Source: Macrostomum lignano
Lineage: Eukaryota
Length of the DNA: 64,000 nt
Direction: 5' to 3'
Assembly: GCA_002269645.1 (NCBI GenBank)
Contig: NIVC01000516.1
Coordinates: 186,001 to 250,000 of the forward strand
Shown piece by piece: positions 5,720 through 47,514 of the stretch. The notes under the pieces are model-generated. The model saw nothing but the letters and a program-made list of their open reading frames with translations, was not told the DNA's origin and did no database searches. Position 1 is the first letter of the stretch; each line of letters begins with the position of its first letter. Both the position numbers and the translations under genes were made by a program.

Positions 5720-8700
5720 TTAGATTGTGTAGATGTTGTGAAAGCGCACTGGCTGCTCCATGATTATAGGGAAGATGACTATTGACATTATACAGACGAG
5801 CAGCGTTATTTTTTGGTTGCTAATTGTCCTCATGGCTGAGTTAAAGTCGCACGGTATTGTAACATTGCGCAGTGCCGGGCAGTACTTCTCTGCGCCGCCG
5901 TCTGAACTCTCGTGGGCGCAGGTTCCATTAATGATGCGATAAGCGCCAGATGCAACCAGTTTTCGCATTAGTTTACAATTGAAGTCGAATGCATTTAGCT
6001 TGCGCTCACGCCAGTTCTCAATGACCAATAGAAACAGGTTTGTGTCCTTTAGCGAGGTCACGTAATAGAAGCCTTGCATGCAGGGTCCAGAGACGTTGCC
6101 AACTAGCATGCGACTTTTGCCTAGTGCTGTCTCGTTTACCTCAAACGAGATTACATCCTGGATGCAGCCATACGAATTAGAGAAACCCGGTATTGGGCCC
6201 CTGGTTTTGTATAGATCGTCGCTCTCCTCAGGTGTAGTCGGTATGCCGTTCATTGTCACCTTTGGCGCGCTGCCGGTGAAACTGCAAGTGCCCTGAAAAT
6301 CTACGGACTCGTCGCGTTGGATTAGACTCTGTCGGAATACAAGATTCATCATCACTTCGCCCTCTTTTTGGCCCAAAGTTACGCCTTTATACTTGCCTTC
6401 GTCCAGATCGGTTGCGGAGATAAAGTCCGGTGCCATTATAACGTTGACGCGATTGTCAAACAGATAGCAAAGCGTACTGCACTTGTTCTTAGTGCCGTCT
6501 GGACACGTGTATTTGGCGTTGCACGATTTAACTCCGTCCGAAGCTTGCATTAGATTATAGACTTTCCGATGGAAGTTATTGTAGTTGAGATCTAAGCTTG
6601 TAATAGCCTCGATGCGCTCTGTTGCGCACCGTTTGCCGTGTTCGATATCCCTGCTTGGTCCCTTGGCCGCGCTAATGTAGCAGTAGCCGCTAATGCACTC
6701 GATGCCTTCCTCACACGGGCAGCCCCCTGGCTTGGCCTTTGTCGTGTTTGAAACTTCACAATCGGATAGGTTTTTATTCTCCATGCCTTCAAATACGGCC
6801 TGAGAAATTGTGATAATTTTACCGCTGCCTGCCGAGTCGAAGTACGGCGTAGATATCGAAGTCTTCGTTGGCGAACTCTTTGTTCGACTGTACCAGGGCC
6901 GAGTAGTGGGATCGTACAACCTTACTGACCGATGCCGGGATACGTTCTGAACACGCCGCTGCGCATGCCGACGTAGGTCCAGATAACCTCGTCTATCCAG
7001 CTGAACTGCCTGTCGCGCCATCTCTCTTCGATTGGTTGCGTCACTAGAATATAGGCGCGCACGCCTTTCTCGTATCTGCTACCATTTTCGCAGCTATCGT
7101 CGCTCGTGTTACCCGTCATGTACTTGTGCGCCTCGAGAGTTTTACCAGCAAGATCGTCGTCGAAAAAGTATTCCAATGGTTCGCAGTAGCACTTTGGGGC
7201 TAGGAATATGCTTGAGTGTAGCTCAGTTACTCGCAGTTTCAAGTATTTCGACATGTTAAATTTGACGTTTAAATATTTGAAAACGTTTGGATAGACGCTG
7301 AGCACTTTGCTGCTATTGTATTCAATTAGCAGATTAAAGTAGCTAGTATTGCGAGGCTTTAGATATGTAAAGTCAACCTTCGGCTCGATCAATCTTCTGT
7401 ACACTTTATCGGTCCTGGATAGAACAAAGGCCACTGAGTAGTCTGTATCGTTCACTTTGCTGTAGTAGTACTCTAATGGCATTGTTTCGTACTTAACTCC
7501 GGCCCTGTGGTCGCCTTTCGGAATGCCGCGTCTACCATTCTTTATTTCAACCATACCAGTTTTTCCGCTTATCATATTGCGAAACACAGTGTTAAACTCT
7601 TTTGGTACGCCTTTTTTGCTTTGCTCCATCCTTTGAATGTGAATGAATATTGGGTCGTCCTTCAGGGTTGCACTGCCTTTCAGGAGTGGATGGTAGATAG
7701 TTTGTCCTTCTTTATCGATCAGGAAGGATGTCACTGAGCCCCATTGCTTTCTTGTAACATAAGTTTCGATCTCTTCTAGCGTGGCATCGACTCCAACCAC
7801 ACCGATGGTTTTTTGCCTGCTCCCTTCAATTTTGCTAATTACTGGTACAGCGTGTGTAACCATAGTTCCTAGGCCAAAGGCGTCAATATAAGGTGAGGTC
7901 CACAGTCCTTCCGTGTTTGGAGAAATTCGAGCTAGAAAGTCAAAATAGTTATCCATACGCGAGATTAGATTTTCGCCGTTCTCTAATTTGCGTAAACTGC
8001 CACTGTGATTGCAGGCAAGTGCACCCGGGAACATTTGACCGTCGTCCTTAATGAGGTAGCTGAATATTCTTGCTTGCGGTCTTGTATTAAGATTAGTCGA
8101 GTTGACGATAGACCAGACCCGTGTCCAATTGTACTTGCATACTGGACCGGGCACGTAGCCAGATCTTGTGTAATAGCCTGGTCCGCAACGCACTGTCTCG
8201 CCATCGGTATCTTTACCATCCGTAATAAAGATTAGAATAGATAAGCATCCAGTTCTAGCTGTAGAATTTAGAAGATCGAATGCCATTTGAAATCCGTGCT
8301 CCAATTCGCTAGTTCCGCCCGGTATGAGTCCATCAATTTTCTCCATCAGATCTTTTCTAAACTCGATTGTCGCTGGTACCATTTTGTTCACTTGACAGCT
8401 AAGCACTTCAGATTTGAAGGAGTGCCACTTGCCGACTTCGTCCCAGTGGCTCGCTCGTGCACAAACAACATTTAAATAATCCTGCTTTGTAAGTGTCTTA
8501 ATTACTGCCTTGGCAACTGATCTGGCGATGCCGAACTTTTCTCCAGCCATGCTGGCACTGCAGTCTATCACAATGACAACATCTTTTGGGCCACTTGTAG
8601 CAGCAATGTACCACGGTCTTATTCTTGGATCGTAGTCTGTGTAAAAGCCAACGAAGTTTGAACTCCATTCTCTTCCAGGAAATAGTCTAGTAACACCTGC

Positions 8701-9390
8701 GCTGGAGCCAAAGTACTGCCATCGAATGCTCGGATCTTTTTTATAATTTTCTATAAATATCTTCTCCAGCTCATGCGTCCATTCGACCGTGAATATTGTT
8801 TCGTTTAAGTCACGCGGTACATCGTCTGCTATTTTAATTGTAGAAATATTGTATGTGATATTCTGTCGGAAGAAAGCCTTCTGAGTCATGCCGACGTCTT
8901 TCAGTTTCTTTGGAATGTCTGAGTCGCGGTAGATGTCCGGGTGCAGATCCTGCAGCTTGGTCGATATTTTTCGCGTGCCGTTCTTTACCTCTTTGTAATA
9001 TCTGGCGTAAACTTCGGCTGCTTTCTTGGCAATCTTTTTAGCGTACTCTTTTTTCTTGCGAAAATATTCGCCCAATTCGCGATTGACTTCTTGAATAACT
9101 TTGCTGCCATCTTTATTCTCGAGCTTGTAAGTTGCCTGGTCAAATAGCATTTGAGTCTGGTCGCGCTGTATGCCATCTGATGCCACCTGCTGTATGTAGT
9201 TCTGAATCATGTCGGCCCAATTGTAAACATCGCCGTACATTGTGCCGTCTTCGTCTCGGCTTCTTGTATCGTCAGATCCGGTCATAGAATAAGTGGTTGC
9301 AACTTTGCTGATTGACTGACAGCAGGCATGACGAACAGACAGGTCCATGTATAGCCATATTGCAGCATAAAGTAGCAGTGATTTATTCAT
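5720..9390 (-). CDS. Voltage-gated calcium channel alpha2delta / CACHD1-family protein (VWA_N, VWA, Cache domains), intronless, with one frameshift at ~6935
   Basis: First ATG at 9390 is followed by a hydrophobic signal (MNKSLLLYAAIWL). Motifs include WQYFGSSAGVTRLFPG, YDPRIRPWYIAATSGPKDVVIVIDCSASM (MIDAS DxSxS), GGT, FITDG, WTSPYIDAFGLG, and a second Cache motif YDPTTRPWY...STPYFDSAGSGKIITIS. The C-terminus is hydrophobic (TM or GPI signal). The two track ORFs join by a -1 shift to read TYPG-HRSVRL-YDP. Confidence 0.88.
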
Positions 9391-11084
9391 TTTGACCTCA
9401 CTAGCACTGTCTCTCTTGTGGCGGCTTTGCACTCGGAGCTGAGCAATGAAAACACAGCCTCTTATAAATCAGTCATTCACCTTTGGGCCAATAGACTCAA
9501 AGCTTTCCCCCCCTAGCCATGCCTGTTCTGCAGTAGGATGAGCGGCACAAGCTCCTGGATAATTCAGTGCGTCTCCCCTGTCCCCAAGCTTGTCCCAGGT
9601 CTCCCCCTGCTCCCCCATTGCTTTTTGTGTACACAGGGACATACAAAGCGTACGCGCGTGACCCTCCTAGTTGGCACCCCCAGAACTGTACTCCATCAGC
9701 CAACAGCAGATCTGCTTGGCGGTTTTACTTCGGCTTAACCGCTGCCCTTCAACCCCTCCCCGTCTCACCGCCGCCCCACCCGCGCCGCTTTTAGTTTCCT
9801 CCGGGCCTACGCCACCTTTTCTTGTCTCTTCCCCTTGGCCCAAATTTGTCTCTCAGTCTTTCATCTCTCGCCCCCCTCTATTTCTCTCTTATCTCGACCT
9901 TCTATCTCCAACTTCCTTGCTCACACAGGCGTTGGCGGCATTCACTAGCCAAAGTTCCCATCGCTTCCCACCCTCTCCCACTTCTCTATCCCAGCCTCCC
10001 AAATTTCATTCCGATTCTACCGCCTCTCTTCTCGGGCCCTACCGCATTAGCCCTAGTTCTAACTGGTGCAGTCCGTGCCTGGTTTATTATTATTGAGTCG
10101 GCTAGCTAGACTAAATCTGCTGTTTAAGGTTTCGCTGAAATTATGGAAATATTTTGAATTAATATAATATATATTTCAATAAGCTATACTGTATTAATTC
10201 TCTTCTCCATTTATAATGCATGCTTCACTATCATTATTTAAAATTTGCCTAGAGCTTTACAAACGCGAGAAGAGTGATGGGGGGAGTACAGAAATATTGA
10301 ATGGTGGACGGATAAGGCTGTTAACGAGATGTCTCGTCTTATTTCTACATTGTTCGGGATAGGCCATGCGGTGCGCTTGCCCTGTAGAACAGCAAGAAGC
10401 AATGTGACAGGCCAGGCGGCAGTGGTGGAGAAGCATGAACTGCCCGCCCCCACTCGATTGGAAGCTCTGCTGGATGCTTCCTGCTTGCAGTTGGCGTGTG
10501 TGTTCGTCTCACGAGGATAGAGTCGGAACGAAGCTGGGAACGCACTGGGGAGCTCTCGATTGAGATGCTTATGAACTGGTCCAGTCTGAGGCTACTGCAG
10601 TTTTTTGGTCGCAGTTGTGAGGAGGAGAGAATAGGGAAGAACTTAAGAGAGAGAAAGGAACGAGGAATAGATGATGGGGGAGCTTTGCTCTAATTACTGC
10701 TGCCCTACTTGTGGTGCACTGTTTCCTAGTCGTTTCTAGCCGCCAGCCGTGCCTCCCTGCCTCTCCTTCCTCTGCTCTAGTTAATTTTGAGTTTCTCCTC
10801 CGGCCAGTCGCGGCATGTCAGTCTTGTGCCGTCCAGCCAACCTATTCAAACAGGAACGAAGCGTCCAATCTAACTTCAGTCTGTGTTTGCTTATGAGTAG
10901 GCTAATACCTGCCTACCGGTTCGGTTCCTAAATTTTGTAGTTTTTTGTAAGAAACCGCAACCATAGCGTAATTAGCGGGCTTCCGTGTACCCCTTATGTT
11001 GGTATCCGATTTCCGATTTCTATCATAGCTGCGTTGGAAGTTTCCCTGTCCTCCCAAAGATATTTTACTGCCTTTACTCTAATC

Positions 11085-11720
11085 CCTTGAGATCACCCTC
11101 TACTCGCTTGCGAATCACCCTCTACTCCCTTAAGAATCACCCTCTACTCCCTTAAGAATCACCCTCTACTCCCTTAAGAATCACCCTCTACTCCCTTGAA
11201 ATCACCGTTTACTTCCTTGAGATCACACTCTACTCGCTTGAGAACCCCCCCCCCCCCTACTTCTTTGGGAAACACCCTCTACTTTGAGAATCACCGCTAC
11301 TCGCTTGAGAAGCACCCTCTACTCGCTTGAGAAGCACCCTCTACTCGCTTGAGAATCACCCTCTACTCCCTTGAGATCACCCTCTACTCGCTTGCGAATC
11401 ACCATCTACTCCCTTAAGATCACCCTCTACTCCCTTAAGAATCACCCTCTACTCCCTTGAAATCACCGTTTACTTCCTTGAGATCACACTCTACTCGCTT
11501 GAGAACCCCCCCCCCCCTACTTCTTTGAGAAACACCCTCTACTTTGAGAATCACCGCTACTCGCTTGAAAAGCACCCTCTACTCGCTTGAGAAGCACCCT
11601 CTACTCGCTTGAGAAGCACCCTCTACTCGCTTGAGAATCACCCTCTACTCGCTTTAGAATCAGTATCTACTCATCAGAAACTCGCCCTCTGGCCTCTACT
11701 TTTCTCAATGAAGAATCCCA
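11085..11720. repeat. ~22-23-bp minisatellite (GAGAATCACCCTCTACTCGCTT-like)
   Basis: Tandem degenerate units with an internal duplicated block containing a poly-C run. Confidence 0.9.
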
Positions 11721-13770
11721 CTATATTTCCGAGAGAATGGCTCTCTACTCTACAAAAAACCCCCAACTTCTCATTCGCTATTGAAGCTCCTGCACTGTTA
11801 GATATTGAATTTAGAGTTCAACCAACCCAGCCTATGGGAGCGTGGGAGCGTGAAAAACTGTCAACTGCTGCTGCTGCTGTCGCTGCGAATCGCGCGTGTC
11901 TTTGCTTCGTTTTTTAGCCCCTGTTTTCCTCCCATCGCAGGATTTCTCCCCGGCTATAATCCTCTTCCATCCATACTGTTCCTCTTGCGCCGCTAATATC
12001 TTGTCGTCCTCGTCGTCGTATGAAATCTTTTCCCTTCCTTCCCATTCTCTCTCTCTCTCGATCGACCCGGCCCGACCCGAGTCTCTCAGAAATGACGGGC
12101 TGCGTTTAGTCGAAATTGGGTTCGAGAAAGGAGCGAGAGGGAGAGAAAGTGAAGGATAGAAGATTTCGCTCGACTACTCGCTGCATTTGCTGTTACTGAG
12201 AAAACATACTAGGCACAGGGAGTGTCAAGGATCCGCATTATTTATCCCCTACTATCCTCTCGGTTCGTTCGTGCCGCAGTGCCTAGGCTTTGGGTTTGCT
12301 TGCCGGCTTAATAAAGCTTCGAAAAGTCTCCGGGAGCAGATGAGAGGGAGAGAGAGCAAGAGAGATTTCTGCCCTGTCTTGTCGCGTCGCGTCTCTCTGT
12401 CCAAGTGTAATTATTTTGGCACGTATATCTTTGAGAGTGTGAATATAGTTGGCTAGTCTATATATATTTATCTTATAGGTTTGCATATTTATACATGTGA
12501 CACAAGTAAACGAATGAAGAATTAATAGTTGAGCTCTGGTTCATGGTGCTGTAGTGGAGTAGCAGCTTTGAGATATTCAATGATCTAATTCAAGGTCAAT
12601 TAACATGTACAAATTTTTATTTTTATTTAGCACTATTCGTTAGAGAAAAAGCCGAGAACAATTGACATTTAATGTTTTCTCCAAGGACTTCTCAAGTAAA
12701 AGGACCGGAAATTACGTTTCTTAAAGAATGTTTTTGAGGTTGGTTTTCGCCGAAAAATATACTGCGGAGATAGGAACTATTTTCATTTTTTCAGCACAAA
12801 AATTCTTATTGCATTCGATAGGAGGCAGACCCAATGTTCATCTTTTGATACGACGTGCCCTTTTTATAGCTCTATTGATATTCGTTTAGAAAAATAGGAT
12901 TCTATGTTTTTTTTCTACGTACATTTCCTTGTACCTGAAAATCAAAGAAATGCATGGCACAGCTCGAATCTTTGGTTTTATGAATCTATTTTATCATCTA
13001 TGTTACACATTGTTACACAGTCAGCTAAGAACGTTAATTAACCATTTCAATGGTTTTTAGGCACAGGACATATGTAATTGTACGTAGAATAAAAAAATCA
13101 CATATAATCCTAGCTTTTTTTAACGAAAAGCTTTATAAATCTGAAAACAGCCATCAAACTAGGGGCCAGCAATTCCCGTGATCACACTGCTTGAGGCGTA
13201 TATGGTTCGTCCCTGTGCATTAATCCAGTCACGTGACTTTGATAGCTCTCAGTTGATGTCGGTGTGAAATAGCCTTTAGTATCCAAGTATGTCACAATCA
13301 TTTTTGAGGCTTTCCTTTTAACTGGCAAATGTCTTTTTTAGGGTTTTTGTGTCATAACGTGTATCATGACGCCAAATTAATTTTGGCATACAAATTTCTG
13401 AATTTGAGCTCTGTAATTTATATTTCATTTGAAGCATCATTAATATCGTTTCAGTCTCGAGATTGAGAAGTATCGTCGCTAAATGCTGCGGACCGCAATC
13501 TAAAACGGGCTGAATCGAACTGTTTGCATTTATTTGTCTAGCTGTTTTAACAGCGACAGTCGTATCCCTGTTAATGTCATAATTTACACATAAGTGTTTT
13601 CGTGTTCAAATATACAAGTTTTTGAGTCTTGATATTGATTTTATGTTCCTTTAAGAGACTGTGTTATTTTTTTTAAACTGTTACAATTCCCAAGCTATAG
13701 ATAGCTTGTCTCGTTATTGAGTACCTTCGTATGTTAGAGTAGTTAGACTTTGGCCTAAAATAGCAAAGTA

Positions 13771-15982
13771 TAAAGTAGATCCTTTACACTGCCATGGCAG
13801 AGTAGAAAGTAGATCCTTTACACTGCAATGGCAGAGTAGAAAGTAGATCCTTTACACTGCCATGGGAGAGTAGAAAGTAGATCCTTTACACTGCCATAGG
13901 AGAGTAGAAAGTAGATCCTTTACACTGCCATGGCAGAGTAGAAAGTAGATCCTTTACACTGCCATGGCAGAGTAGAAAGTAGATCCTTTACACTGCCATG
14001 GGAGAGTAGAAAGTAGATCCTTTACACTGCCATAGGAGAGTAGAAAGTAGATCCTTTACACTGCCATAGGAGAGTAGAAAGTAGATCCTTTACACTGCCA
14101 TAGGAGAGTAGAAAGTAGATCCTTTACACTGCCATAGGAGAGTAGAAAGTAGATCCTTTACACTGCCATGGCAGAGTAGAAAGTAGATCCTTTACACTGC
14201 CATGGAGAGTAGAAAGTAGATCCTTTACACTGCCATGGAGAGTAGAAAGTAGATCCTTTACACTGCCATAGGAGAGTAGAAAGTAGATCCTTTACACTGC
14301 CATGGCAGAGTAGAAAGTAGATCCTTTACACTGCCATGGCAGAGTAGAAAGTAGATCCTTTACACTGCAATGGCAGAGTAGAAAGTAGATCCTTTACACT
14401 GCCATGGCAGAGTAGAAAGTAGATCCTTTACACTGCCATGGGAGAGTAGAAAGTAGATCCTTTACACTGCCATAGGAGAGTAGAAAGTAGATCCTTTACA
14501 CTGCCATAGGAGAGTAGAAAGTAGATCCTTTACACTGGCATGGCAGAGTAGAAAGTAGATCCTTTACACTGCCATAGGAGAGTAGAAAGTAGATCCTTTA
14601 CACTGGCATGGCAGAGTAGAAAGTAGATCCTTTACACTGGCATGGCAGAGTAGAAAGTAGATCCTTTACACTGGCATGGCAGAGTAGAAAGTAGATCCTT
14701 TACACTGGCATGGCAGAGTAGAAAGTAGATCCTTTACACTGCAATGGGAGAGTAGAAAGTAGATCCTTTACACTGCAATGGGAGAGTAGAAAGTAGATCC
14801 TTTACACTGCCATAAGAGAGTAGAAAGTAGATCCTTTACACTGCAATGGGAGAGTAGAAAGTAGATCCTTTACACTGCGATTGGAATTATGACTTCAGTC
14901 CTGGAACTTTTATGACGCACAGTGTAAGTCTTTTACACTGCCATGGCAGAGTAGAAAGTAGATCCTTTACACTGCAATGGGAGAGTAGAAAGTAGATCCT
15001 TTACACTGCCATGGCAGAGTAGAAAGTAGATACTTTACACTGCCATGGGAGAGTAGAAAGTAGATACTTTACACTGCAATGGGAGAGTAGAAAGTAGATC
15101 CTTTACACTGCCATAGGAGAGTAGAAAGTAGATCCTTTACACTGCCATAGGAGAGTAGAAAGTAGATCCTTTACACTGGCATGGCAGAGTAGAAAGTAGA
15201 TCCTTTACACTGCCATAGGAGAGTAGAAAGTAGATCCTTTACACTGGCATGGCAGAGTAGAAAGTAGATCCTTTACACTGGCATGGCAGAGTAGAAAGTA
15301 GATCCTTTACACTGCATGGCAGAGTAGAAAGTAGATCCTTTACACTGGCATGGCAGAGTAGAAAGTAGATCCTTTACACTGCAATGGGAGAGTAGAAAGT
15401 AGATCCTTTACACTGCAATGGGAGAGTAGAAAGTAGATCCTTTACACTGCCATAAGAGAGTAGAAAGTAGATCCTTTACACTGCAATGGGAGAGTAGAAA
15501 GTAGATCCTTTACACTGCGATTGGGGGTGGAATTATGACTTCAGTCCTGGAACTTTTATGACGCACAGTGTAAGTCTTTTACACTGCCATGGGAGAGTAG
15601 AAAGTAGATCCTTTACACTGCAATGGGAGAGTAGAAAGTAGATCCTTTACACTGCCATGGGAGAGTAGAAAGTAGATACTTTACACTGCCATGGGAGAGT
15701 AGAAAGTAGATACTTTACACTGCAATGGGAGAGTAGAAAGTAGATCCTTTACACTGCGATTGGGGGTGGAATTATGACTTCAGTCCTGGAACTTTTGACA
15801 CACAGTGTAAGTCTTTTACACTGCCATGGGAGAGTAGAAAGTAGATCCTTTACACTGAAATGGGAGAGTAGAAAGTAGATCCTTTACACTGAAATGGGAG
15901 AGTAGAAAGTAGATCCTTTACACTGACATGGGAGAGTAGAAAGTTCATCCTTTACACTGACATGGCAGAGTAGAAAGTAGGC
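13771..15982. repeat. 34-bp minisatellite (GATCCTTTACACTGCCATGGCAGAGTAGAAAGTA)n with three interrupting cassettes
   Basis: Period 34 (GATCC at 13778 and 13812). A non-unit cassette recurs at ~14881, ~15521 and ~15760. Confidence 0.97.
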
Positions 15983-16146
15983 CCATCGCTATAAATAAGT
16001 AGAATTGAAAGTAGAACCGTTGCTGTCAATTCTCAATGAAGTGGATCCGTCGCCTTAAAAATGAGCCGAACTCCCAATGACAGCTGAATGATTTCGCATT
16101 GCTGCTACCCGCATTCGGTTATCCGCCCATCGCGGGCTACCAGCCG

Positions 16147-19100
16147 ATGCCTGGCCGGCTCGGCCAGCAACTGCTTCATCATCAGCATCATCTTCATCAT
16201 TCCATGCTGGCTCAACAGCCTGGCGCTGTTGGAGTCCAGACGGCAGCCCAGTCGGCAATGGTTAGCGGCACAGGCGAAATCGATAAGAAAGGCGAGCCGT
16301 ACTGCAAAGCTGTGTACGCTGTTGCGGAGCGCTATTTGAAACACATGTCGCCTGAACAGCGCGAAGATATGCGCAAATTATTCAATTCGTGGAAGAATGC
16401 ACCAGATAAGCTTGACGTTAGTTTCATGTACAAATTAAGCGGTTGGCGCGCCGTCTACACATTGAATCTGTTTCGCAGTCGAATTCAGACAGTTTGGTTC
16501 TCGTTGAAACAGTTGCTATCCAGCCAGAGCGGTATTGGGCCGCAGTTGGCCGAGATTTTGAATCGCACCCAGCGTATTGTCAGCATCGGCTGCGGCCCTG
16601 GTCCTTGCATAGCCTCCATCCTTATCGCACTCCGAGACTACGTCGGATTCACCAAGTACGTTAAGCTGATTGGCATCGACCAGTTCATTGGCTGGGGCCC
16701 GTATGTCACTTCGATGAATAGCGTTGAAGAGGCCGGTGCCAGTAGTGTCGAATTCTGGCACGAACGAGTAGAAGAGGCCACTATAGATTCGCTGCCAAAT
16801 GCGGATGTGGCTATAATGTCTTACACTGACGCAGCTATTCATACGCCAAAGTTCTGGGAGACGATGCGCATGAAATTTGCTTTCATCCTGGTGCTAGACC
16901 AGCGCAAAGGCGCTCTGTCACGCGAGTTGCAGCGCCAAGGATTCGGCCACTTCGAATACGAGTTCAAGGGTAGCAAGCGAGTGTTTTATTACATTAATCC
17001 GTTTGGCGAGTTTCTTAAGCTGGCTCACGGAGCCGGTGGCGGCGGCGCCCGCGGAACATTCGATGGAGCCGGTGGCTTGCGGGCAGGCGGAGCTGACGAC
17101 GACGACGACGACAATGATTCTTCCGTGTTTGACGACGACAGCTCTCTGTCGACATCGTCGTCTTGCTCCGGCTCGTCCTATTCGTCAGATGAAGAAGAAG
17201 ATAACGCAGCTTCTGCCGCTCTAGAAGATTCTGAAACGGTTGCTCGCGAAGTTGAACAGGTTGTGACGTTCCTGCTCGACAAAACCGAGGAGTCGCTGCT
17301 GCTTGGCCGCGACGAATCGATACGTCCGCACGCCGTCACCCCGGAGGAGATCGCCCTAGCCGCGGCGGTTGTCCGCCAGGCGGAGGCGCACGATCGAACA
17401 ATTGATAAGCGGCGAGTTGTTGAAAACACCATTGACGTGTCGCTAGAACTGGAGGCCATCATCACCAAGGAGCTCGTGGCCGCTGTTGAAAGTATGAACG
17501 CGTCGGCTGCTGCCGCCGAAAACAGCAAATCGTCTTCTTCATCGACCAAGTCCAAGAAGCAGCACCGACAGTCCCGTCGAAGTCGCCAATCCAAGACAAT
17601 GTTGGCGACCACAGTGGAGTTGGACGAAGACGAGCTGTCGACGCTGAACGACGCCAACAGTTCGAGCGACGCTACCATAGTCGACAAGAAGTCCTCAACT
17701 CAACAGTCTGCGCCGACATCATCGACGCCTGGTCGGCCAGCTGCACCAGCGCCGGTGTTTGTGTCGGTGCCAATCTCGCAGATCGCCGAACTGGAACAGG
17801 TTCGCCGTATCGAACAGGAACTCGGCCTGCCGTCGGTGCCAAAACGTAAAGTTGAAAATCTCAATCTGTCGCGCAATCGGCACAGAGCCCAGCTGAATAA
17901 GACTCAGCAGGACCAGCTAGTCAAAGCGCTACTACGCGACATGGGCGAAGATCCCGACGAGGCTGCCGCCGGACAAGGCAGCGGCAGCTCTAGTAGCAGC
18001 GACGACGAAGAAGAAGAAGAGAACGAGAATGTCAACGAGCTGTGCGACGCTGATATTGAGGAGAAGTACTTTCCAAAGCTTGACAAATCGGCTGCTGGTA
18101 GCGGCGCAAAGGCCGCTTCTTCAGCAGCAGCAGCTACAATATCAACAACTACAGCAGTCTCGGTGTCGCAGCCGACCCAGTCGAAACCAACGCTGGCACC
18201 GACACCGATGAATAAAGTCGGCGTCAGCGCTGCAGCGACAGCCGGCGGCGGCAGCGAACGAGTCCTATCGGTGAAGATGCCGGAGTGGGCGCAGTCTCTC
18301 ATCCACAGCTGGTCAGGCGAGTCGTCTGGCCACATTCTCAGCGCTTCTCGCCGACCCGGCGCCGGCGGCAATAAATCTGCCTGTATTATCAACCTGACTG
18401 GCGGCCCGATGCCGCCTATTGGAGCAGTCGGTCCCAGCAGGCCGATGCAAAATCAGCAGCAGCAGCAACAGCAATGGCGCAGTCCAGCGCCTAATAATAA
18501 TCCCCAACGCCAACCGGCTCCATTGGTGCATTCGCCTGGCGGGCCGATTTCAACTGGCTATCAGCAGCGCCCAGTCATGGCCCCGCCGACTATGCCACCT
18601 CGGCCTTCGCTTGCGCAGGGCTATCAGCATCAGGGCCAAGCTGCGGAGCCGCCAAGCCAAGTCGCTGGCTATCCAGCCAAGCCCGCTGCCGCCGCCGCAG
18701 CCTCCGCGCCTTTGTCGGCAGCCGCCGCCAGACGGATGACTGAAGACGAGCGAATCCTTGAAGAGGAGACCCAGAAATTTCTCGAACGGATGGGCGTTAT
18801 TAAACCGAGCGGAGGCGGCGGCAGCAGCGGTGGCAGTCGGGAACGCGACAGGGACCGGGACCGAAATCGAGATCGGGATCCGGACTATGGGCGCGGTCGG
18901 GATAGAGATCGATTTAGTCGCCGGCGGCAACTGTCCTCGCAGCGACGCTCGCCGCCCCGATCCCCGCCTCGATCCCCGTCTCGGTCGCCGTCTGAATCAC
19001 CGAAGCAGCAAAAGCAGCAGAGGGTGCCGCGATCGCCGCCTCGATCGCCCAGGTCGCCGCCTTCGTCGCCGAAGCGACGTCGACAATCGTCGCCGCCGCC

Positions 19101-19764
19101 GCCGCCGCCGAAGTCTTCGCCACAGCGGCAGCAGCCTCTGGCAGCCGCTACGGCTGCCACGGTGTCGCCAGTGGCCAGACAGACCAGTCTGGTCTCTGTT
19201 GTCGTTGCAGCCGATGCCGGTTCTGGCGGCGGCTCCGTGTCGAATTCTTCGTCGACGTTGAAGCGATCGTCCCGACAGCGGCAAGCCAGCGCCAGCAGCG
19301 GCAGCAGTAAACGGCAGAAACTGCCGAAGCCTTCCCCCGAGAGTAGCCGAGATCAGGTCAAGGACAAACGACGGTCGGCCGAACTCAAGAAGGAACGCGA
19401 TAAAGAGAAAGAAAAAGAAAAGGAAAAAGAGAAAAAGAAGCGACACGAACAACGCCAGCTTGAGGAGAAAAAGAAGAAGAAAAAGCATCACCAGCATCAT
19501 CATCATCATCACCGCGGCAGTGCCGAGAAGGACAAGCGACAGTCCTCAAAGTCGGTTAAAACAAAGGACAAAGGCAGCGCCAACAACAGGATCGACTCGC
19601 CCGACCTGCGGGCACTCGAGGATCTGGAATTTGTTAGCGAAGATTCTGATCTTGAGCAGTTGAACTATGCTCACCAGCTGGCTGCAGAAGCGGCGGCTAA
19701 AAAGCAACAGCAGCAGGTTCTTAACGGAACCAGCGATAATAAGCGAATCAAATCAAAGCGATAA
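16147..19764 (+). CDS. Class I SAM-dependent methyltransferase-like domain fused to a long disordered acidic/Ser-Pro/RD-RS/Lys/His-rich tail; single exon
   Basis: The frame is open 16081-19764 and the first ATG is at 16147. Motif I IVSIGCGPGP (16576-16605), motif II KLIGIDQ (16663-16683), then DVAIMSY. The globular region ends near YYINP (~17000). Codon usage is GC-rich like the other genes, and AATAAA follows 45 nt after the stop. The true start is uncertain (possible acceptor CAG at 16081-16083). Confidence 0.85.
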   Translation: MPGRLGQQLLHHQHHLHHSMLAQQPGAVGVQTAAQSAMVSGTGEIDKKGEPYCKAVYAVAERYLKHMSPEQREDMRKLFNSWKNAPDKLDVSFMYKLSGWRAVYTLNLFRSRIQTVWFSLKQLLSSQSGIGPQLAEILNRTQRIVSIGCGPGPCIASILIALRDYVGFTKYVKLIGIDQFIGWGPYVTSMNSVEEAGASSVEFWHERVEEATIDSLPNADVAIMSYTDAAIHTPKFWETMRMKFAFILVLDQRKGALSRELQRQGFGHFEYEFKGSKRVFYYINPFGEFLKLAHGAGGGGARGTFDGAGGLRAGGADDDDDDNDSSVFDDDSSLSTSSSCSGSSYSSDEEEDNAASAALEDSETVAREVEQVVTFLLDKTEESLLLGRDESIRPHAVTPEEIALAAAVVRQAEAHDRTIDKRRVVENTIDVSLELEAIITKELVAAVESMNASAAAAENSKSSSSSTKSKKQHRQSRRSRQSKTMLATTVELDEDELSTLNDANSSSDATIVDKKSSTQQSAPTSSTPGRPAAPAPVFVSVPISQIAELEQVRRIEQELGLPSVPKRKVENLNLSRNRHRAQLNKTQQDQLVKALLRDMGEDPDEAAAGQGSGSSSSSDDEEEEENENVNELCDADIEEKYFPKLDKSAAGSGAKAASSAAAATISTTTAVSVSQPTQSKPTLAPTPMNKVGVSAAATAGGGSERVLSVKMPEWAQSLIHSWSGESSGHILSASRRPGAGGNKSACIINLTGGPMPPIGAVGPSRPMQNQQQQQQQWRSPAPNNNPQRQPAPLVHSPGGPISTGYQQRPVMAPPTMPPRPSLAQGYQHQGQAAEPPSQVAGYPAKPAAAAAASAPLSAAAARRMTEDERILEEETQKFLERMGVIKPSGGGGSSGGSRERDRDRDRNRDRDPDYGRGRDRDRFSRRRQLSSQRRSPPRSPPRSPSRSPSESPKQQKQQRVPRSPPRSPRSPPSSPKRRRQSSPPPPPPKSSPQRQQPLAAATAATVSPVARQTSLVSVVVAADAGSGGGSVSNSSSTLKRSSRQRQASASSGSSKRQKLPKPSPESSRDQVKDKRRSAELKKERDKEKEKEKEKEKKKRHEQRQLEEKKKKKKHHQHHHHHHRGSAEKDKRQSSKSVKTKDKGSANNRIDSPDLRALEDLEFVSEDSDLEQLNYAHQLAAEAAAKKQQQQVLNGTSDNKRIKSKR

Positions 19765-19808
19765 AATCAACATTTCAAAATGCATTGATGACAGCGACCT
19801 GGCTATTA

Positions 19809-19814
19809 AATAAA
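19809..19814 (+). promoter_or_regulatory. Polyadenylation signal of the methyltransferase gene
   Basis: AATAAA shortly after the TAA stop at 19762-19764. Confidence 0.6.
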
Positions 19815-20224
19815 AAAACACAAATGCCTACTCTTTGAAATATGCATTTACTCGCGCATTCATGCCTACCAAAAACTCTTAATAAGCGCTTTTACATGCG
19901 TCTGTGCGTATGTGTCTATCACCGGTGCTTCATTCAAGCGTCATGTAATAATTATTATTTTAACAAGGTTATTTAGGGAAAATCATATATGGTCGTATTA
20001 TATAGTTGCTGTGTATCGCAGATACCAGAATAACTACTAGATGTTGTCCCTCGCAATTAAAGCTGTCGAAAGTAGTTGCGTCTACTCTTTTTTCAGTAGT
20101 TTGTCTGCGCAGTGTCACTAAAATTTCAAGTGGCAGCTAAAATTTGCGGCCTCAAGAACATATGTGGTTAAGAACAAGCTTTTAATTCGGTGTACACAAG
20201 TAAACACAAAACGAACTAAACTCA

Positions 20225-20425
20225 GTCTGGGGGCAGGCCTAATCTGGCTCAGCCAATGGGAGAGCAGTAAGGAGAGAGGTCGAAGTCAGACACACGAAAC
20301 TCAGTCTAGGCCTAGGGGGAAGGCCCAATTTAGCTCAGCCAATGGGAGAGCAGTAAGGAGAGAGGTCGGTCGAAACTTAGCCTAGGGGGTAGGCTCAACC
20401 TTGCTCAGCCAATAGGAGAGCATTA
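20225..20425. repeat. Three imperfect ~75-bp repeats each containing GCTCAGCCAAT(G/A)GGAGAGCA (CCAAT boxes), LTR/promoter-like
   Basis: Direct repeats visible at ~20248, ~20334 and ~20403. Confidence 0.6.
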
Positions 20426-22632
20426 CTCGTAAGGAGAGAGATCAAAAGTTAGACACAATCGGGCAAGAGAGAAGCCAAGAAAGGCCTGGCTAGGGGCCGC
20501 CATCCCTTTTCTCTCTTGCTCGCTATGCATACACTGGGTTTGGATTTTTATTTCTTTCATTTCTTTGTTAAGAATTTTCGGGTCTGATGCTGGGAGTCGG
20601 TAAAACAAGATGAAGATGCTAATCTAATGGTTCCGCTTGCAGAAAGCCAGAGACAATTTAAAAAAAACTTGAAAAAAAATCTTTTATAATGTAATCATTT
20701 TTTCTCATATAGGCAAAAACGCTATTTTGCTACTGAAAACAGAGTAGATAAGCGCATTTTGCAAGTGACATCTATCAATAGTTATTCTAGTATCTGTGAT
20801 ATGTATCGAATTCTTTTGTTGCAAAAAGGTTTCTTTAAAAAGACAAAAAAATTCTATAACAGATAACCCTTTCAATTTCCCATTTTGTCTAAGTTACAAA
20901 ATCACAATATGTGTTGCTTTGTGTAGATACACAACTCCTAACTTCATTAAAACAATTTTTAGATTTCAAAATGTGTTTGTTTAAAGCTTTGATTGCCTTT
21001 CATATTGCGATAATTGATGGTATTTTTTATTATACAGTGTTCGATTCGAATATATGTTCTCTCTGTTTATATTGTGTCTCTTAAAGTCCTATTGCAGTCT
21101 GCTAGCTCTACTGAGACTGGGGTAACCCTCAGTACAAACTACAAAGGCTGTATACTTACTATGTAAGCCAGGACCCAGTTTATTTTCAGCAAAATTAATA
21201 TGCGGTTTAGTTACATTGGATGAGAACTTGTGTATAGATTACCTTGTCCTTTGGATTCACTCAGTACTAGCTTCTGCCTGTCTGTGCCTGTCTGTCTTTG
21301 AGGTCTGTCTTAGTGTCTTAGTGTCTTAGTGTCTGTCTGTCTGTCTGTCTACATGTCTGTCAGTCAGTTTTATTGTACAGACTTATCTCGCTACAAACAC
21401 ACTTTGAATCCAATGGTTGTCTCAACTTCAACTTTCAATTTATTATCCATTATTCTTAATGGAATTATTTATAAGCAAAATTAAAAAACCACAAGGACTG
21501 TTTATCACAGCCAGTCAAGTTCTAGAACCTATATCGCTGATTAAGCCAGTTTGCACACGTGGTGTCCCATTAATTTTTTTCTGTTTTAAATTATTTCTTC
21601 TAGGTATTTTTTGCTTAGAAGACCCACCCGTATGAAGAGTTTAGAATTTGTCTGTTTTATTAATTAATTCCTTTCGCACGCTACTGAAGAAATTGGAAAT
21701 TTGCAAGTAGTATATAATAGCCTCGCGCGCTGCTTGTTCTGCGTTGCCATGGGCAAATTATCATGCTGCATCATCTTATAGCCTTGGCTTTGTCTGTTTT
21801 TTTTATTACTAAATTTGCTGTTTGCGTAGTTAAGCTGCTTAAGGTAATAATAAATACAATTATTGGCTACTTGTAAGACAAGTTTTTTCCTATATTACTG
21901 AAGAACTAATGTTTTTTGTGCAATGATAATTTCATTTTTTGACCTTTAGTTGGGATCTCACACATTCACACAGACATTTTATTTTTAGTAATAGGATATA
22001 ATGCTTAAATGCGCAGGCAGTGTATTTTGGCTCGACTTGCCTGTTTATTTCTTAGTTCATCTGCACTGGTCTATTTTCTCTTCAGTCTTGTTATTTTCTT
22101 ACTTTCTCCTTCGCTGCCTTCCGATTCAAAGACATGCAATAAGCGATTGTCTATGGTTGAAACCTTTGCAGTTTTACAACTCGTACTCGGTCTAGGATAT
22201 TTTACGCACTTGAAAAACATAGATGAAGGAATATCAAATACATGCAACTCAGGCTCCCGTAATTTCCTCACTAAATCGTGGGTGAAATAATGTAAGATTA
22301 CTACTAGGCTTTCGTAGTAAGCCTAGTAAGCCTAGTAGTAGGCATATTGTCCTATGACTGAGCGTGCGTTGAAAAAATTCTTCGTCACAGCACTGTACTT
22401 TATTATCTGCACGCTTTTTGTTCCTGCAGCTAGGAGTTCCTACCATAGACATTTTCTTAGTGACCATAGACAATTTCTTGCTATTCACAAGCTTCTGATC
22501 GTGAGTTTGGCCCCATATGGATTCATTGTTTAGCAATTTGACGATCATTATTCACATTTTTAATGCAGAACAATCCATTACTACAAACAATGCATTGTCT
22601 GTAGGATCGTCAAACAGAAAAACAATGCAAAG

Positions 22633-24265: not shown

Positions 24266-24344
24266 TTGTGTACCTCGTATTACCAAACAGCTGTCCTGTT
24301 TGATTGTCAAAAATACCATTTAGATCGTCAAAAGCGATACTACA

Positions 24345-24961
24345 AGTATTGGTTTTTGCGAGCTATCTCAGCCAAGGAGCAAGCAAACTCATCCATCCCA
24401 TAGATTTCAATACGACGAAGGAGGTGGTTTGAACCATAGACTATCACGTTTTTTCAACCAAACTCATCCAACGGGCGAGCAATCTCAGCCATAGCTTGTT
24501 TATTAAGCGAAAAATTTAATTGGTTCGTATATAAGAGACTTTATGATAGAGCAGCACATCAATCTTGCTTGATTCCTCCCTTATTCCGCCACGTTGGAGA
24601 GCAGCAATTCTTCCAGTAGCTACGTAAGTCCGGATTATATGTCTGGACGTCTTCAGCTTTATCCCGAGAATGCGTGAAGCAGTGCTCAAATTTTGTCCGT
24701 CATTCCATGCGTTGATTAGCTTCTCTCTGTCGGAGTTGGATGTTTGTCGCAACTGAGCCATCGGAGGAGGAGGAAAGAAAGAAGGGAAGAGGAAATGAAT
24801 GGGCAGACAAGCTATGGCTGAGATTGCTCGCCCGTTGGATGAGTTTGGTTGAAAAAACGTGATAGTCTATGGTTCAAACCACCTCCTTCGTCGTATTGAA
24901 ATCTATGGGATGGATGAGTTTGCTTGCTCCTTGGCTGAGATAGCTCGCAAAAACCAATACT
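24345..24961 (-). mobile_element. Non-autonomous element with perfect 155-bp inverted arms enclosing an IS630/Tc1-type N-terminal HTH fragment
   Basis: 24345-24499 is the exact reverse complement of 24807-24961. Internal ORF 24516-24761 (MAQLRQTSNSDREKLINAWNDGQNLSTASRILGIKLKTSRHIIRTYVATGRIAALQRGG) has the paired-like HTH signature of IS630/Tc1 transposase N-termini. No DDE domain. Confidence 0.8.
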
Positions 24962-26002
24962 GCTTTTTGCTTTGTTCGCGATATACATTTGCCTTCTGAG
25001 ACGAACATTTCTATACTGAAATGAACATTTAAACATCTTCCACGGAAATAATTTAGATTTCCCTACATGTACCTTACATGTAAAGGTTTTGAAAGTTACC
25101 AACTGTTAACGATAATTTGATAAGCGACACAGCTAGTTTTTTAATTCTAAAAACGCATATTGCACACATTAATGACAAATCAACTCTTTAAAATCTGTTT
25201 AAAACACCAATCTTATTAACTCGATGCTTGAAGTATCTTCTGTTAGGATTGACCAATACGAGTATATGACAATTCACCACGGCAACTGACAAGTACAGAC
25301 CAAAATTCTTGGTCAATAAACTTGTATAAAATCACATCGAACCAGCTTCAAATGATGTCTAAAAAATGACTAAATGGTGCATAAGTCGGTCGCCAATTAC
25401 CAAGATTTATATTATAGTTAAACTACTACACAAGGACGCCACACGCATGCACAGCTCCCGCCTGTGGAGCCGTGTGCACAGGCGGTTAGTTTCAACAATA
25501 TATTTGATGTCTATGGAGAACAGACAGAAAAGCACATTGTTAATGCAGATGCGCAGACAATGGCAATGCACTGTTTTTATGCGCTTAATAGCAGCCTTTG
25601 AAACAGGTTGGCGAGAAGTCTAGTTAAAAAACAATTGAGGACACAGCCCGAGCAAGAATGTAACGAATTTCATGAAGACCGACGTACAAACATGAATCGA
25701 ACTATTAAAATGGTACTAGCTACTTATAGTAGTATAGGAAATGACGGGAATGGAAAAAGAGGGGACGGCGATATCTGCCCAAAAATGGCACGGAATGTTG
25801 ATGATGATAATAAAGTAGGAATGCATGCGATCTATTACAATTAAGTAAATACAATCAATTGTTTTATTTAAGTCTCGGACGCAGGACAAAAGCCTGGTTT
25901 AATTTTTGACTACGAGCATTTCTGTGGGTGCAAAATGGACCCTAAGTAAGCGTGAGCATTAATAGCTACTAATATAATTACTGTCATTATACGCATGCTT
26001 GG

Positions 26003-26158: not shown

Positions 26159-26261
26159 ATGTTAAAATTTATACGGATATCAGTACTGATGTGAAGTTGC
26201 TTAAAGAAATTAATTAAGAACTATGCCTTAGGCTACCCTACATATCACCCCAAATGTACAA

Positions 26262-26428
26262 CAACCGGCTAAGTGTACACTAACCCACCCTTAGATGTAC
26301 ACTAACCTACCCCTAGATGTACACTAACCCACCCCTAGGTGTGCACTAACCCACCCTTAGATGTACACTAACCCACCCCTAGATGTACACTAACCCTTCC
26401 CCTAGATGTACACTAACCCACCCCCTAC
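26262..26428. repeat. 23-bp minisatellite (GATGTACACTAACCCACCCYTA-like)
   Basis: About 7 tandem units. Confidence 0.9.
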
Positions 26429-27218: not shown

Positions 27219-28212
27219 GGATACTCAGGGGGAGATGCTGTCTCTCAGCTAGGGGTATTCAGGGGGAGATGCTGTCTCTCAGCTGGGGTATTCAAAGGGA
27301 GATGCTGTCTCTCAGCTGGGGGTATTCAGAGGGAGATGCTGTCTCTCAGCTGGGGGTATTCAGAGGGAGATGCTGTCTCTCAGCTGGGGGTATTCAGAGG
27401 GAGATGCTGTCTCTCAGCTGGGGGTATTCAGAGGGAGATGCTGTCTCTCAGCTGGGGGTATTCAGAGGGAGATGCTGTCTCTCAGCTGGGGGTATTCAGA
27501 GGGAGATGCTGTCTCTCAGCTGGGGGTATTCAGAGGGAGATGCTGTCTCTCAGCTGGGGGTATTCAGAGGGAGATGCTGTCTCTCAGCTGGGGGTATTCA
27601 GAGGGAGATGCTGTCTCTCAGCTGGGGGTATTCAGAGGGAGATGCTGTCTCTCAGCTAGGGGTATTCAGAAAGATATGCTGTCTCTCAGCTGGGGGTATT
27701 CAGAAAGAGATGCTGTCTCTCAGCTGGGGTATTCAGGGGGAGATGCTGTCTCTCAGCTGGGTATTCAGGGGGAGATGCTGTCTCTCAGCTGGGGGTATTC
27801 AGAGGGAGATGCTGTCTCTCAGCTGGGGTATTCAGAGGGAGATGCTGTCTCTCAGCTGGGGGTATTCAGGGGAAGTTGCTGTCTCTCAGCTGGGGGTATT
27901 CAGAAAGAGATGCTGTCTCTCAGCTGGGGGTATTCAGAGGGAGATGCTGTCTCTCAGCTGGGGGTATTCAGGGGAAGTTGCTGTCTCTCAGCTGGGGGTA
28001 TTCAGAAAGAGATGCTGTCTCAGCTGGGGTATTCAGAAAGAGATGCTGTCTCAGCTGGGGTATTCAGAAAGAGATGCTGTCTCTCAGCTGGGGGTATTCA
28101 GGGGAAGTTGCTGTCTCTCAGCTGGGGGTATTCAGAAAGAGATGCTGTCTCTCAGCTGGGTATTCAGGGGGAGATGCTGTCTCTCAGCTGGGTATTCAGG
28201 GGGAATGCTGTC
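27219..28212. repeat. 34-bp minisatellite (GGGAGATGCTGTCTCTCAGCTGGGGGTATTCAGA)n
   Basis: About 29 tandem units. Source of spurious ORFs 27269-28272. Confidence 0.97.
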
Positions 28213-28304
28213 TGCTTCATGGCTACACATCCCCATAACGTAAACAAAACAGATAATAAAAAAACGATATAAAAAGTACATAAAATAAAAAGTACAGAAG
28301 TGAA

Positions 28305-37300: not shown

Positions 37301-38361
37301 ATGCTCACTTATTATCAGGGTAGCGAGCGATTCTTTCAACGGGCTGTCACTGAGGATAAAGAGTTTGTTAGCTTTGACAATCTGGGCCACCAGCTGCACT
37401 ATGAGGTAAGCCTAAGGCATTCGGCACACTATCGGTGTTTCATTGCGCGTGAGCTCATTGGTCCTCAATCGGTGTTTTCGTGTGTTTTTCTGCTTTCACT
37501 GACCACAATTTGTGTCTTGTATGTGTCTGGTATCATTGATCATCAGATGTGTCTCATTGATCATCAGATGTGTCTCGTTGATCCTCAGTTGTGTCACATT
37601 AATCCTCAGTTGTGTCTCATTGATCCTCAGTTGTGTGTCTCATTGATCCCTCAGTTGTGTCTCATTGATCCTCAGTTGTGTGTCTCATTGATCCCTCAGT
37701 TGTGTCTCATTGATCCTCAGTTGTGTGTCTCATTGATCCCTCAGTTGTGTCTCATTGATCCTCAGTTGTGTGTCTCATTGATCCTCAGTTGTGTGCCTCA
37801 TTGATCCTCAGATGTGTGCCTCAATGATCCTCAGTTGTGTGTCTCATTGATCCTCAGTTGTGTGCCTCATTGATCCTCAGTTGTGTGCCTCATTGATCCT
37901 CAGTTGGGTGCCTCATTGATCCTCAGTTGTGTGCCTCATTGATCCTCAGTTGTGTCTCATTGATCCTGAATTGTGTCTTATTGATCCTCAGTTGTCACTC
38001 ATTTATTGGTCCTCAGCTGTGTCTCATTGATCCTCAGTTGTCACTCATTTATTGGTCCTCAGCTGTGTCTCATTGATCCTCAGTTGTCACTCATTTATTG
38101 GTCCTCAGCTGTGTCTCATTGATCCTCAGTTGTCACTCATTTATTGGTCCTCAGCTGTGTCTCATTTATTGGTCCTCAGCTGTGTTTCATTAGTCCTCAG
38201 TTGGGTGTCATTGGTCCTGTTTATTAACAAATTTAATGCCTCCTACTTATCAAGCTAGTAATATATAGCGAAATTGATTTCCCTTTCAATTTATCCAGGT
38301 CGAGCCTTACCGGAGCCAAGTCCGAGAGGCGATGTGCAATTGGATTCTCAGCAGGTGTTAA
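34317..38361 (+). CDS. Monoglyceride lipase-like alpha/beta hydrolase, 5 exons: 34317-34408, 34497-34603, 35104-35417, 37130-37405, 38299-38361
   Basis: All junctions are GT-AG with consistent phases. Motifs: AHGLGEHS, DHYGHGLS, the nucleophile GHSMGG, acid LHARPD and histidine GHQLHYE. The exon 3 donor (GTGCTG) is weak. Confidence 0.88.
35520..37075. repeat. 24-bp minisatellite (CCGTTTAATTCCMCGAGAGGCCTA)n in lipase intron 3
   Basis: About 60 units. Gives spurious PFNSPRGL / ELNGRPLG ORFs. Confidence 0.97.
37540..38222. repeat. ~21-23-bp minisatellite (GTCTCATTGATCCTCAGTTGT) in lipase intron 4
   Basis: Tandem degenerate units. Confidence 0.93.
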
Positions 38362-47395: not shown

Positions 47396-47514
47396 GGGGT
47401 TGGGCCAACCCACAAGGCACAGAGACTGTACATGTCTGGCAATTAGAAAGTCGGGGCTGCTGTACACCCTGTGTGAGCGCGTGTTTGAATGCGTGCCTGC
47501 GTACAGTATTGGCG

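Follow-up and report, generated by a model that had tools for sequence, protein, structure and literature searches.

The stretch of DNA analyzed here, called the window below, comprises 64,000 nucleotides of contig NIVC01000516.1 from the flatworm Macrostomum lignano (assembly GCA_002269645.1). Our subject is a gene on its plus strand at positions 16147..19764, whose product joins a predicted class I S-adenosylmethionine (SAM)-dependent methyltransferase domain to a long C-terminal tail that is mostly predicted to be disordered. The domain represents an uncharacterized family that has no Pfam model and is restricted to flatworms among named sequences. All features of the gene are given on the plus strand.

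A Single-Exon Gene and Its Duplicate

The open reading frame (ORF) extends from a TTG at 16099 to 19764, and its first ATG, at 16147, begins a complete coding sequence (CDS) of 1205 amino acids (aa) plus a stop codon. The frame holds 1227 stop-free codons, whereas no frame longer than 404 codons arose when the same bases were shuffled 1000 times. GenBank already lists the gene as a hypothetical protein: the CDS of P0020 (NIVC01000516.1, GCA_002269645.1) comes from the same locus, has a translation identical to that of the window, and is annotated as 5'-partial from 16108, with 3657 nt that make up 1218 codons and a stop. Since this CDS is colinear with the ORF, the gene consists of a single exon, as an earlier note on this DNA, made from the sequence alone, had said. 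The M. lignano protein PAA74335.1 was the top match (100% identity, HMMER with aa 42-313), and P0020 is a second member of the same cluster.

The frame is open to 16081, with a CAG at 16081-16083, and we therefore considered an upstream coding exon or a trans-splice acceptor, which we rejected. We retained the ATG at 16147 because the GenBank models begin at 16105 or 16108 without an AG and because the N-terminus of the domain aligns with the starts of short homologs. An AATAAA hexamer resembling a polyadenylation signal (19809..19814) begins 45 nt past the stop codon. Scans of the window against Rfam and for tRNA genes gave no matches. The M. lignano annotation rests on transcripts assembled from RNA-seq data under guidance of the genome, among which novel ones had to reach an RPKM (reads per kilobase per million mapped reads) of at least 0.5 (PMC5730564), so the GenBank model is in itself indirect evidence that the gene is transcribed, a point on which the earlier note had left its proposal exposed.

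A second copy of the whole locus lies on NIVC01000955.1 (L005) and is 98.9% identical to window positions 15846-21956 over 6.1 kb, in keeping with reports of large recent duplications in the DV1 line of M. lignano (PMC5730564). The two coding sequences differ by 26 synonymous and 9 non-synonymous codon differences and by two single-codon in-frame indels. By the NG86 method, the whole CDS has 0.0033 non-synonymous (dN) and 0.030 synonymous (dS) substitutions per site (dN/dS 0.11), the domain has dN 0 and dS 0.044 (dN/dS 0), and the tail has dN 0.0044 and dS 0.026 (dN/dS 0.17). With a ratio of 0.17 against the duplicate, the low-complexity tail is evidently translated and constrained, and is no repeat-derived accident.

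These results bear directly on whether there is a real protein here at all. The window is rich in tandem repeats of the kind that make long spurious ORFs, the tail is of low complexity, and a satellite array abuts the gene, so that the ORF or its tail could be imagined as a chance or repeat-derived open frame or as an artefact of annotation. Against this stand the length of the frame relative to its shuffles, the 26:9 ratio of synonymous to non-synonymous differences with indels that are in-frame only, the homologs of the domain across flatworms, and the transcript-based gene model; moreover, the CDS contains only two short 12-nt repeats. The idea of an artefact is effectively refuted, and the gene is expressed and selectively constrained.

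The Methyltransferase Domain

AlphaFold2 (AF2), supplied with an 18-sequence family alignment, modeled aa 42-298 with a mean predicted local distance difference test score (pLDDT) of 87.7 and a predicted template-modeling score (pTM) of 0.86. The model has seven strands alternating with helices (model residues 102-106, 131-137, 158-164, 180-184, 205-209, 226-231, and 235-242) and a β6-β7 hairpin at its end. The seven-stranded Rossmann core occupies aa 141-295 (16567..17031) and is preceded by an N-terminal helical bundle (aa 42-140, 16270..16566), which appears as helices in the AF2 model (model residues 2-99, pLDDT >85) and in the alignments, and which carries the motif W-R-A-V-Y-T, FRAxYT in the family consensus, along with the invariant Tyr104. 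Ahead of the bundle, aa 1-41 (16147..16269) form a His/Gln-rich low-complexity leader that is not conserved in P0002, a paralog in M. lignano described below. The model and the Foldseek matches thus agree with the earlier note in placing a compact Rossmann-type methyltransferase in the first ~290 aa; the N-terminal placement stands, with the refinement that the first 41 residues are a leader and that the helical bundle belongs to the domain.

The motifs quoted in the earlier note are all where it had put them. Motif I, IVSIGCGPGP, starts at aa 144 (16576..16605) and forms the GxGxG loop for SAM, in which Gly148 and Gly150 are invariant among 30 family members. Motif II, LIGIDQ, starts at aa 174 (16666..16683) and includes the invariant Asp178 that ends β2, followed by the invariant Trp183. 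The acidic residue at the end of β2 is the expected ligand of the SAM ribose hydroxyls in class I methyltransferases, and Asp178 takes this place here. The β4 segment ADVAIMSY (16801..16824) carries the invariant Asp220 and the near-invariant Ser225, at the position where motif IV usually sits next to the substrate site. The β5 segment ILVLDQ (16885..16902) carries the invariant Asp251, a candidate substrate-contacting or catalytic residue to judge from its conservation. In ATG numbering, the 30-member alignment has nine invariant positions: Tyr104, Gly148, Gly150, Asp178, Trp183, Asp220, Trp237, Asp251, and Phe266. The window protein keeps all nine, and for this reason the window copy should bind SAM and be catalytically competent.

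A Foldseek search of the PDB with the model retrieved 139 chains at E<=0.001. Among the 50 matches listed, nearly all are SAM-dependent methyltransferases, with the top matches at a Foldseek probability of 1.0; the best E-value among them is 3.8e-6 (PH1948, 1wy7) and the best TM-score normalized by the query is 0.53 (METTL17, 8csp). RNA methyltransferases are prominent among these listed matches, namely PH1948, METTL17, METTL6, Trm5a, RlmCD, and TrmR. The solved structures of PH1948 (1wy7), METTL17 (8csp), DnrK (1tw2), and METTL6 (7f1e) share with the window domain its predicted seven-stranded α/β fold, the GxGxG loop, and the acid after β2, and match it with E-values from 4e-6 to 1e-4 and probability 1.0. 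None of them is close, however: TM-scores reach only 0.32-0.53 at sequence identities of 9-15%, with no one family ahead of the others. The seven-strand sheet and the β6-β7 hairpin of the model, together with the GxGxG loop and the acidic end of β2, place the domain in the class I superfamily.

Distribution of the Family

Relatives of the domain were sought with an exhaustive HMMER scan of aa 42-313 against 1.84 billion representative proteins, mostly prokaryotic or metagenomic, at E<=0.001. The scan returned 19 relatives, and all of the named ones come from Platyhelminthes. No bacterial or archaeal protein was found at this threshold, so the horizontal origin that the earlier note had entertained finds no support, and the family has an old vertical history in flatworms. 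The same note had called the protein lineage-specific, and rightly so: the long-tailed form occurs only in Macrostomum-type sequences. A word-indexed search with aa 1-318 had returned nothing, not even the gene itself, apparently because low-complexity words swamped its candidate list; alignment A1 retrieved 6 proteins in such a search, and a clean alignment of the clade B proteins described below worked.

The relatives split into three clades, A, B, and C. Clade A is made up of the window protein with its duplicate, the M. lignano paralog P0002 (UniRef A0A1I8IXL6; 1094 aa, 80% identical in the domain), and P0003/P0021 (run DRR639838; at least 592 aa, 49% identical). The long tail is confined to this clade. 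We would like to note that at the P0003 locus (L002, 398-420) an intron acceptor (tttgatttgcag/AG) lies inside the helical bundle of the domain, and that the window clade A gene and an M. lignano clade B gene (L006; Mlig019032) are intronless; M. lignano genes have about 5 introns on average (PMC5730564).

Clade B consists of single-domain proteins of 200-350 aa, for which we found no precomputed Pfam domain and no functional name. M. lignano has its own copies, and the clade is further represented in Schistosoma, Trichobilharzia, Heterobilharzia, Clonorchis, Paragonimus, Fasciola, Fasciolopsis, and Echinostoma, as well as in Taenia, Hymenolepis, Rodentolepis, Mesocestoides, and Spirometra and in the monogeneans Cichlidogyrus and Protopolystoma. 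Its members P0049-P0066 are about 60% identical to the clade consensus and cover every major parasitic flatworm group. The clade B domain, as in the Hymenolepis diminuta protein VDL19351.1, is homologous to that of the window protein (phmmer E=4.5e-12, 20-27% identity) and shares its invariant residues. In contrast to the window protein, clade B proteins lack a tail and are annotated only as "unnamed protein product" or "N2227 domain-containing". Clade C comprises proteins of 240-310 aa from contigs that look eukaryotic, given the size of some of them (0.26-1.2 Mb), their sparse gene calls, and a reverse-transcriptase fragment.

Comparison With Described Methyltransferase Families

The earlier note could not recognize the enzyme as METTL3/14/16, PRMT, DOT1, NSUN, TGS1, or DNMT, and our searches lead to the same view. 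Scanned against Pfam at E<=1, the full protein gave no methyltransferase match, including none to METTL3/14 (MT-A70), METTL16, PRMT, DOT1, NSUN, TGS1, or DNMT, and sequence searches of the PDB were likewise empty for these families. The Rossmann fold is predicted, and no characterized ortholog was found.

Several matches were rejected. The sole Pfam match of the full protein, DUF4719 (E=0.015, 15.6 bits), is compositional and falls on an acidic tract. Queries with the domain alone, with the family consensus, and with two profiles of the family drew a single PDB sequence match, a spurious one to an acyl-carrier protein. UniRef labels some clade B members as "N2227 domain-containing", after the carnosine N-methyltransferase family, and PF07942 gave no match at E<=5 to 10 with P0005, other members, or the consensuses. 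The UniRef label "FERM domain-containing" could not be reproduced with Pfam either.

The recurring top Pfam match, for the family consensus, for the consensuses of two of the three clades, and for several single members, is PF11312 (Methyltransf_34). It was obtained with the consensus of the whole family (E 5e-5, 23.1 bits), with those of clade B (E 2.1e-5, 24.3 bits) and clade C (E 6.5e-4, 19.4 bits), and with P0065 alone (E 2e-4, 21.1 bits). The match is colinear, covering about positions 24-181 of the 304 in the profile, from the helices before motif I to β4. Yeast Bmt6 (YLR063W), the methyltransferase that makes m3U2843 in 25S ribosomal RNA (rRNA), belongs to PF11312, which used to be called DUF3115 (PMC5307852, PMC3950682). 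Bmt6 and its family resemble the window domain in being class I Rossmann methyltransferases with helices ahead of motif I; they differ in that Bmt6, from fungi or "lower eukaryotes", is 365 aa long and lacks an extended tail, and in that only about a third of the profile finds a counterpart.

The Long Tail

The 910 aa that follow the domain (17032..19761) are mostly predicted to be disordered, which agrees with the ~900-aa disordered tail of the earlier note. In the full-length AF2 model, 677 of 1164 residues have a pLDDT below 50, all of them in the tail or at the C-terminal edge of the domain. In this model the tail has isolated helices only (aa ~356-458, 544-598, 713-723, 866-881, 1068-1118, and 1165-1193) and no further globular domain. 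Its composition is dominated by Ser (14%), Ala (11%), Arg (8.5%), and Pro (7.7%).

Read from its N-terminal end, the tail first shows an acidic/Ser tract, DDDDDDND...SSDEEED (aa 317-352, 17095..17202), and has a second such tract at 17986-18030. Between them, PKRKV at aa 565 (17839..17853), matched by eye, resembles a classical monopartite nuclear-localization signal and may act as one. Further basic clusters, which include KRRRQ and KKKKKK, lie at aa 976-984, 1055-1062, 1096-1113, and 1199-1205. A Gln/Pro region contains a poly-Gln run (aa 768-776). An Arg-Asp (RD) run of alternating charge, RERDRDRDRNRDRD...GRGRDRDR, starts at aa 898 (18838..18912) and is followed by an RSP/SP-rich segment that resembles an arginine/serine (RS) domain, RRSPPRSPPRSPSRSPS...PRSPPRSPRSPPSSPKRRRQSSPPPPPP (aa 933-992, 18943..19122), within which a 12-nt tandem repeat occupies 18958-18993. 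A Lys/Glu and poly-Lys tract (aa 1081-1113, 19387..19485) is predicted to form a long, charged single helix and leads into HHQHHHHHH at aa 1114 (19486..19512), a tract with one codon fewer in the duplicate locus.

Partitioning into nuclear speckles or the nucleolus is favored by tracts that are RS-like, of alternating charge, or made of poly-His. A strict SR protein has one or two N-terminal RNA-recognition motifs (RRMs) followed by an RS domain of at least 50 aa with more than 40% Arg plus Ser and consecutive RS/SR dipeptides. The window protein has no RRM according to Pfam, and its repeats are RSP(P) rather than RS/SR runs. Its richest 50-aa stretch (aa 897-946) reaches 54% Arg plus Ser, belongs partly to the RD run, and holds 13 of the 24 RS/SR dipeptides of the protein. 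To judge by these features, the protein would be at most "RS-like" or "SR-related".

Methyltransferases with long charged tails are common. Drosophila Bin3/MePCE and TGS1 are RNA-modifying methyltransferases with long, disordered, charged extensions, and SRRM1/2 are SR-related. Shared with the window protein are the combination of a catalytic domain with a long, low-complexity, basic, Ser-rich region and the RSP-type repeats. No sequence relationship connects these proteins with it, and Pfam finds no Bin3, Methyltransf_15, RRM, or PWI domain in the window protein.

Only two islands of the tail are conserved with P0002 in BLASTP comparisons, ERVLSVKMPEWAQSLIHSWS (E=1.3e-5) and EFVSEDSDLEQLNY (E=0.002). 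The former, the only well-conserved one, corresponds to VLSVKMPEWAQSLIHSWS at 18262..18315 (65% identity) and is predicted to be helical (AF2 model residues 672-682, pLDDT ~70). The latter corresponds to the C-terminal acidic motif LEFVSEDSDLEQLNY at 19624..19668 (79% identity). A BLASTP comparison of the tail with P0003 found nothing significantly conserved. The general character of the tail, which is charged and Ser-rich with a basic C-terminal half, is thus maintained, but the specific "speckle-type" tracts are not.

Surroundings of the Gene

A 34-bp satellite array (65 copies with 89% matches; 13767..15980, no strand assigned) has the consensus AGTAGAAAGTAGATCCTTTACACTGCCATGGGAG and stops about 170 bp before the start codon, in the place where promoter-proximal sequence would be expected; in L005, too, this array lies ahead of the duplicate gene. 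Some 500 bp beyond the 3' end of the gene, at 20229-20438, are three direct copies of a ~54-nt unit with CAGCCAATGGGAGAG, which has a CCAAT-box-like core. A transposon or long-terminal-repeat context for the gene was considered and rejected, as its flanks hold satellites only and no long repeats. A 182-nt inverted repeat (24318-24499 and 24807-24988), 93% complementary and with arms 307 nt apart, has the look of a foldback element or of a miniature inverted-repeat transposable element.

Tandem-repeat arrays with 22-bp and longer units lie at 11049-11691, 26247-26422, 27269-28272, 35654-36772, and 41695-43328. They give rise to spurious ORFs of up to 513 codons in two or three frames and are satellites, not genes; the Pfam matches to SelB_WHD3, Cornifin, and ANTAR in these ORFs are false. 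Two adjacent long ORFs on the minus strand (5720-9432) with VWA_N, VWA, and Cache/dCache domains are, by this architecture, probably exons of one gene for a voltage-gated calcium-channel alpha2-delta subunit. On the plus strand, Hydrolase_4 (serine aminopeptidase S33, monoglyceride-lipase-like) is matched over its C-terminal half by an ORF at 37106-37804 (E=2e-13), which then enters a repeat and is probably one exon of an alpha/beta-hydrolase gene. Leucine-rich repeats are numerous (LRR_8, E=5e-63) in the protein encoded by a GC-rich ORF pair (59%) at 44216-46836 (+). This protein also has a hydrophobic segment on its C-terminal side and a basic tail on the cytoplasmic side, so that the pair is a gene for a transmembrane receptor-like protein of the leucine-rich-repeat type. 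The ORF at 47400-48146 (+), which contains LLYNAETWTLT, resembles the C-terminal part of a non-LTR retrotransposon reverse transcriptase.

Discussion

What the enzyme does can be approached from the weak but recurring Bmt6 signal, from the RNA methyltransferases among the structural matches, and from the clusters resembling nuclear-localization signals together with the RS-like basic tail. On these grounds we favor a nuclear RNA methyltransferase, which we hold tentatively and at somewhat less than an even chance. The tail would import the enzyme into the nucleus and, by multivalent charge interactions, would concentrate it on bodies rich in RNA or ribonucleoprotein, either the nucleolus or speckles. 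In these bodies the domain would methylate RNA, plausibly a base in rRNA or in another abundant non-coding RNA. The long, rapidly evolving, disordered C-terminal extension has been acquired by one Macrostomum-type clade. A more far-reaching version strikes us as doubtful when its parts are taken jointly: the family would have arisen, or diverged beyond recognition, in flatworms and would install a lineage-specific RNA modification, for instance an rRNA base methylation like the m3U of Bmt6, and the condensate-forming tail of the Macrostomum paralog would redirect this activity to a nuclear body.

Several observations weigh against a nuclear RNA methyltransferase. All PF11312 scores (13.7-24.3 bits) are under the Pfam gathering threshold of 26 bits, and Pfam scans of the window protein itself and of the clade A consensus gave no PF11312 match, for which reasons we treat PF11312 as a lead and not as membership. 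Yeast Bmt6 is mainly cytoplasmic. Literature and expression searches for Mlig009940 returned no expression level, tissue, or localization data. The RD run, the RSP repeats, and the poly-His tract are absent from P0002, which has other low-complexity tracts instead, and P0003 does not preserve the RS, RD, and His tracts either, so these tracts may have no targeting role. Given that they are missing from a paralog with an 80% identical domain, they may reflect compositional drift in a fast-evolving disordered region. The targeting to condensates that the earlier note had proposed is thereby made less likely, since it is only the general character of the tail that is kept.

A further difficulty concerns catalysis itself. 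Where the window protein reads RIVSIGCGPGP (aa 141-153), P0002 reads RVHRL--RSGP and has lost motif I. If this loss is genuine, the enzymatic role of the domain can be dispensed with, and one might then suppose that the window protein too is a pseudo-enzyme or a SAM-sensing scaffold that uses its fold for binding only, with the tail, three quarters of the protein and under purifying selection, as the functional part. For P0002, however, there is just a UniRef model that stems from an earlier assembly prone to errors, and its motif I change is either that of a real pseudo-enzyme or a local assembly frameshift; the window copy and its duplicate, for their part, keep all nine invariant residues, with no non-synonymous change across the domain. 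A non-catalytic role for the window protein therefore seems to us quite unlikely. Were the enzyme active on proteins instead, methylating Lys, Arg, His, or N-terminal residues of nuclear proteins, the tail could serve as a scaffold that recruits substrates, and its conserved islands do look like short linear motifs for protein binding. The class I fold is common to many seven-β-strand protein methyltransferases, the Foldseek matches are generic, and no sequence feature excludes a protein substrate. Nevertheless, at E<=1 to 10 Pfam gives no match to any protein-methyltransferase family, such as PRMT, Methyltransf_16, and N2227, neither a DxxY nor a double-E motif can be read after β4, and the only recurring family signal, weak as it is, is to an rRNA methyltransferase, so that we consider a protein substrate unlikely. 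Foldseek matches of equal rank to the RNA enzymes include many small-molecule O-methyltransferases, among them natural-product enzymes (DnrK, CalS11, 3mcz), as well as NNMT, and this, along with the N2227 label on some clade B members, could point to an O- or N-methyltransferase of metabolites whose tail is unrelated to catalysis. These matches are generic, with low TM-scores (0.32-0.51), N2227 is absent in Pfam even at E<=10, and a basic, RS-like tail of 910 aa with clusters resembling nuclear-localization signals is atypical of metabolic enzymes, and we regard a metabolite substrate as very unlikely.

The novelty lies in recognizing a methyltransferase family that is apparently restricted to flatworms, lacks both a Pfam model and a structure, and has one clade in which the domain is fused to a tail. 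The fold itself is the commonest methyltransferase fold, and the gene is not a new kind of system; in presenting it as the best candidate for one, the earlier note claimed too much for one gene. An active domain would define a new family in the best-known methyltransferase superfamily. The short form occurs in Schistosoma, Fasciola, Clonorchis, Taenia, Hymenolepis, and monogeneans and has no named relative outside flatworms among the 1.84 billion proteins searched, and on these grounds the family is a reasonable candidate for a flatworm-specific modification pathway. M. lignano is free-living and amenable to RNA interference and transgenesis, and would be a practical animal in which to look for the substrate. 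The copy with the long tail, finally, is a clean natural example of a disordered region that was added to an enzyme and that evolves very fast while under purifying selection.

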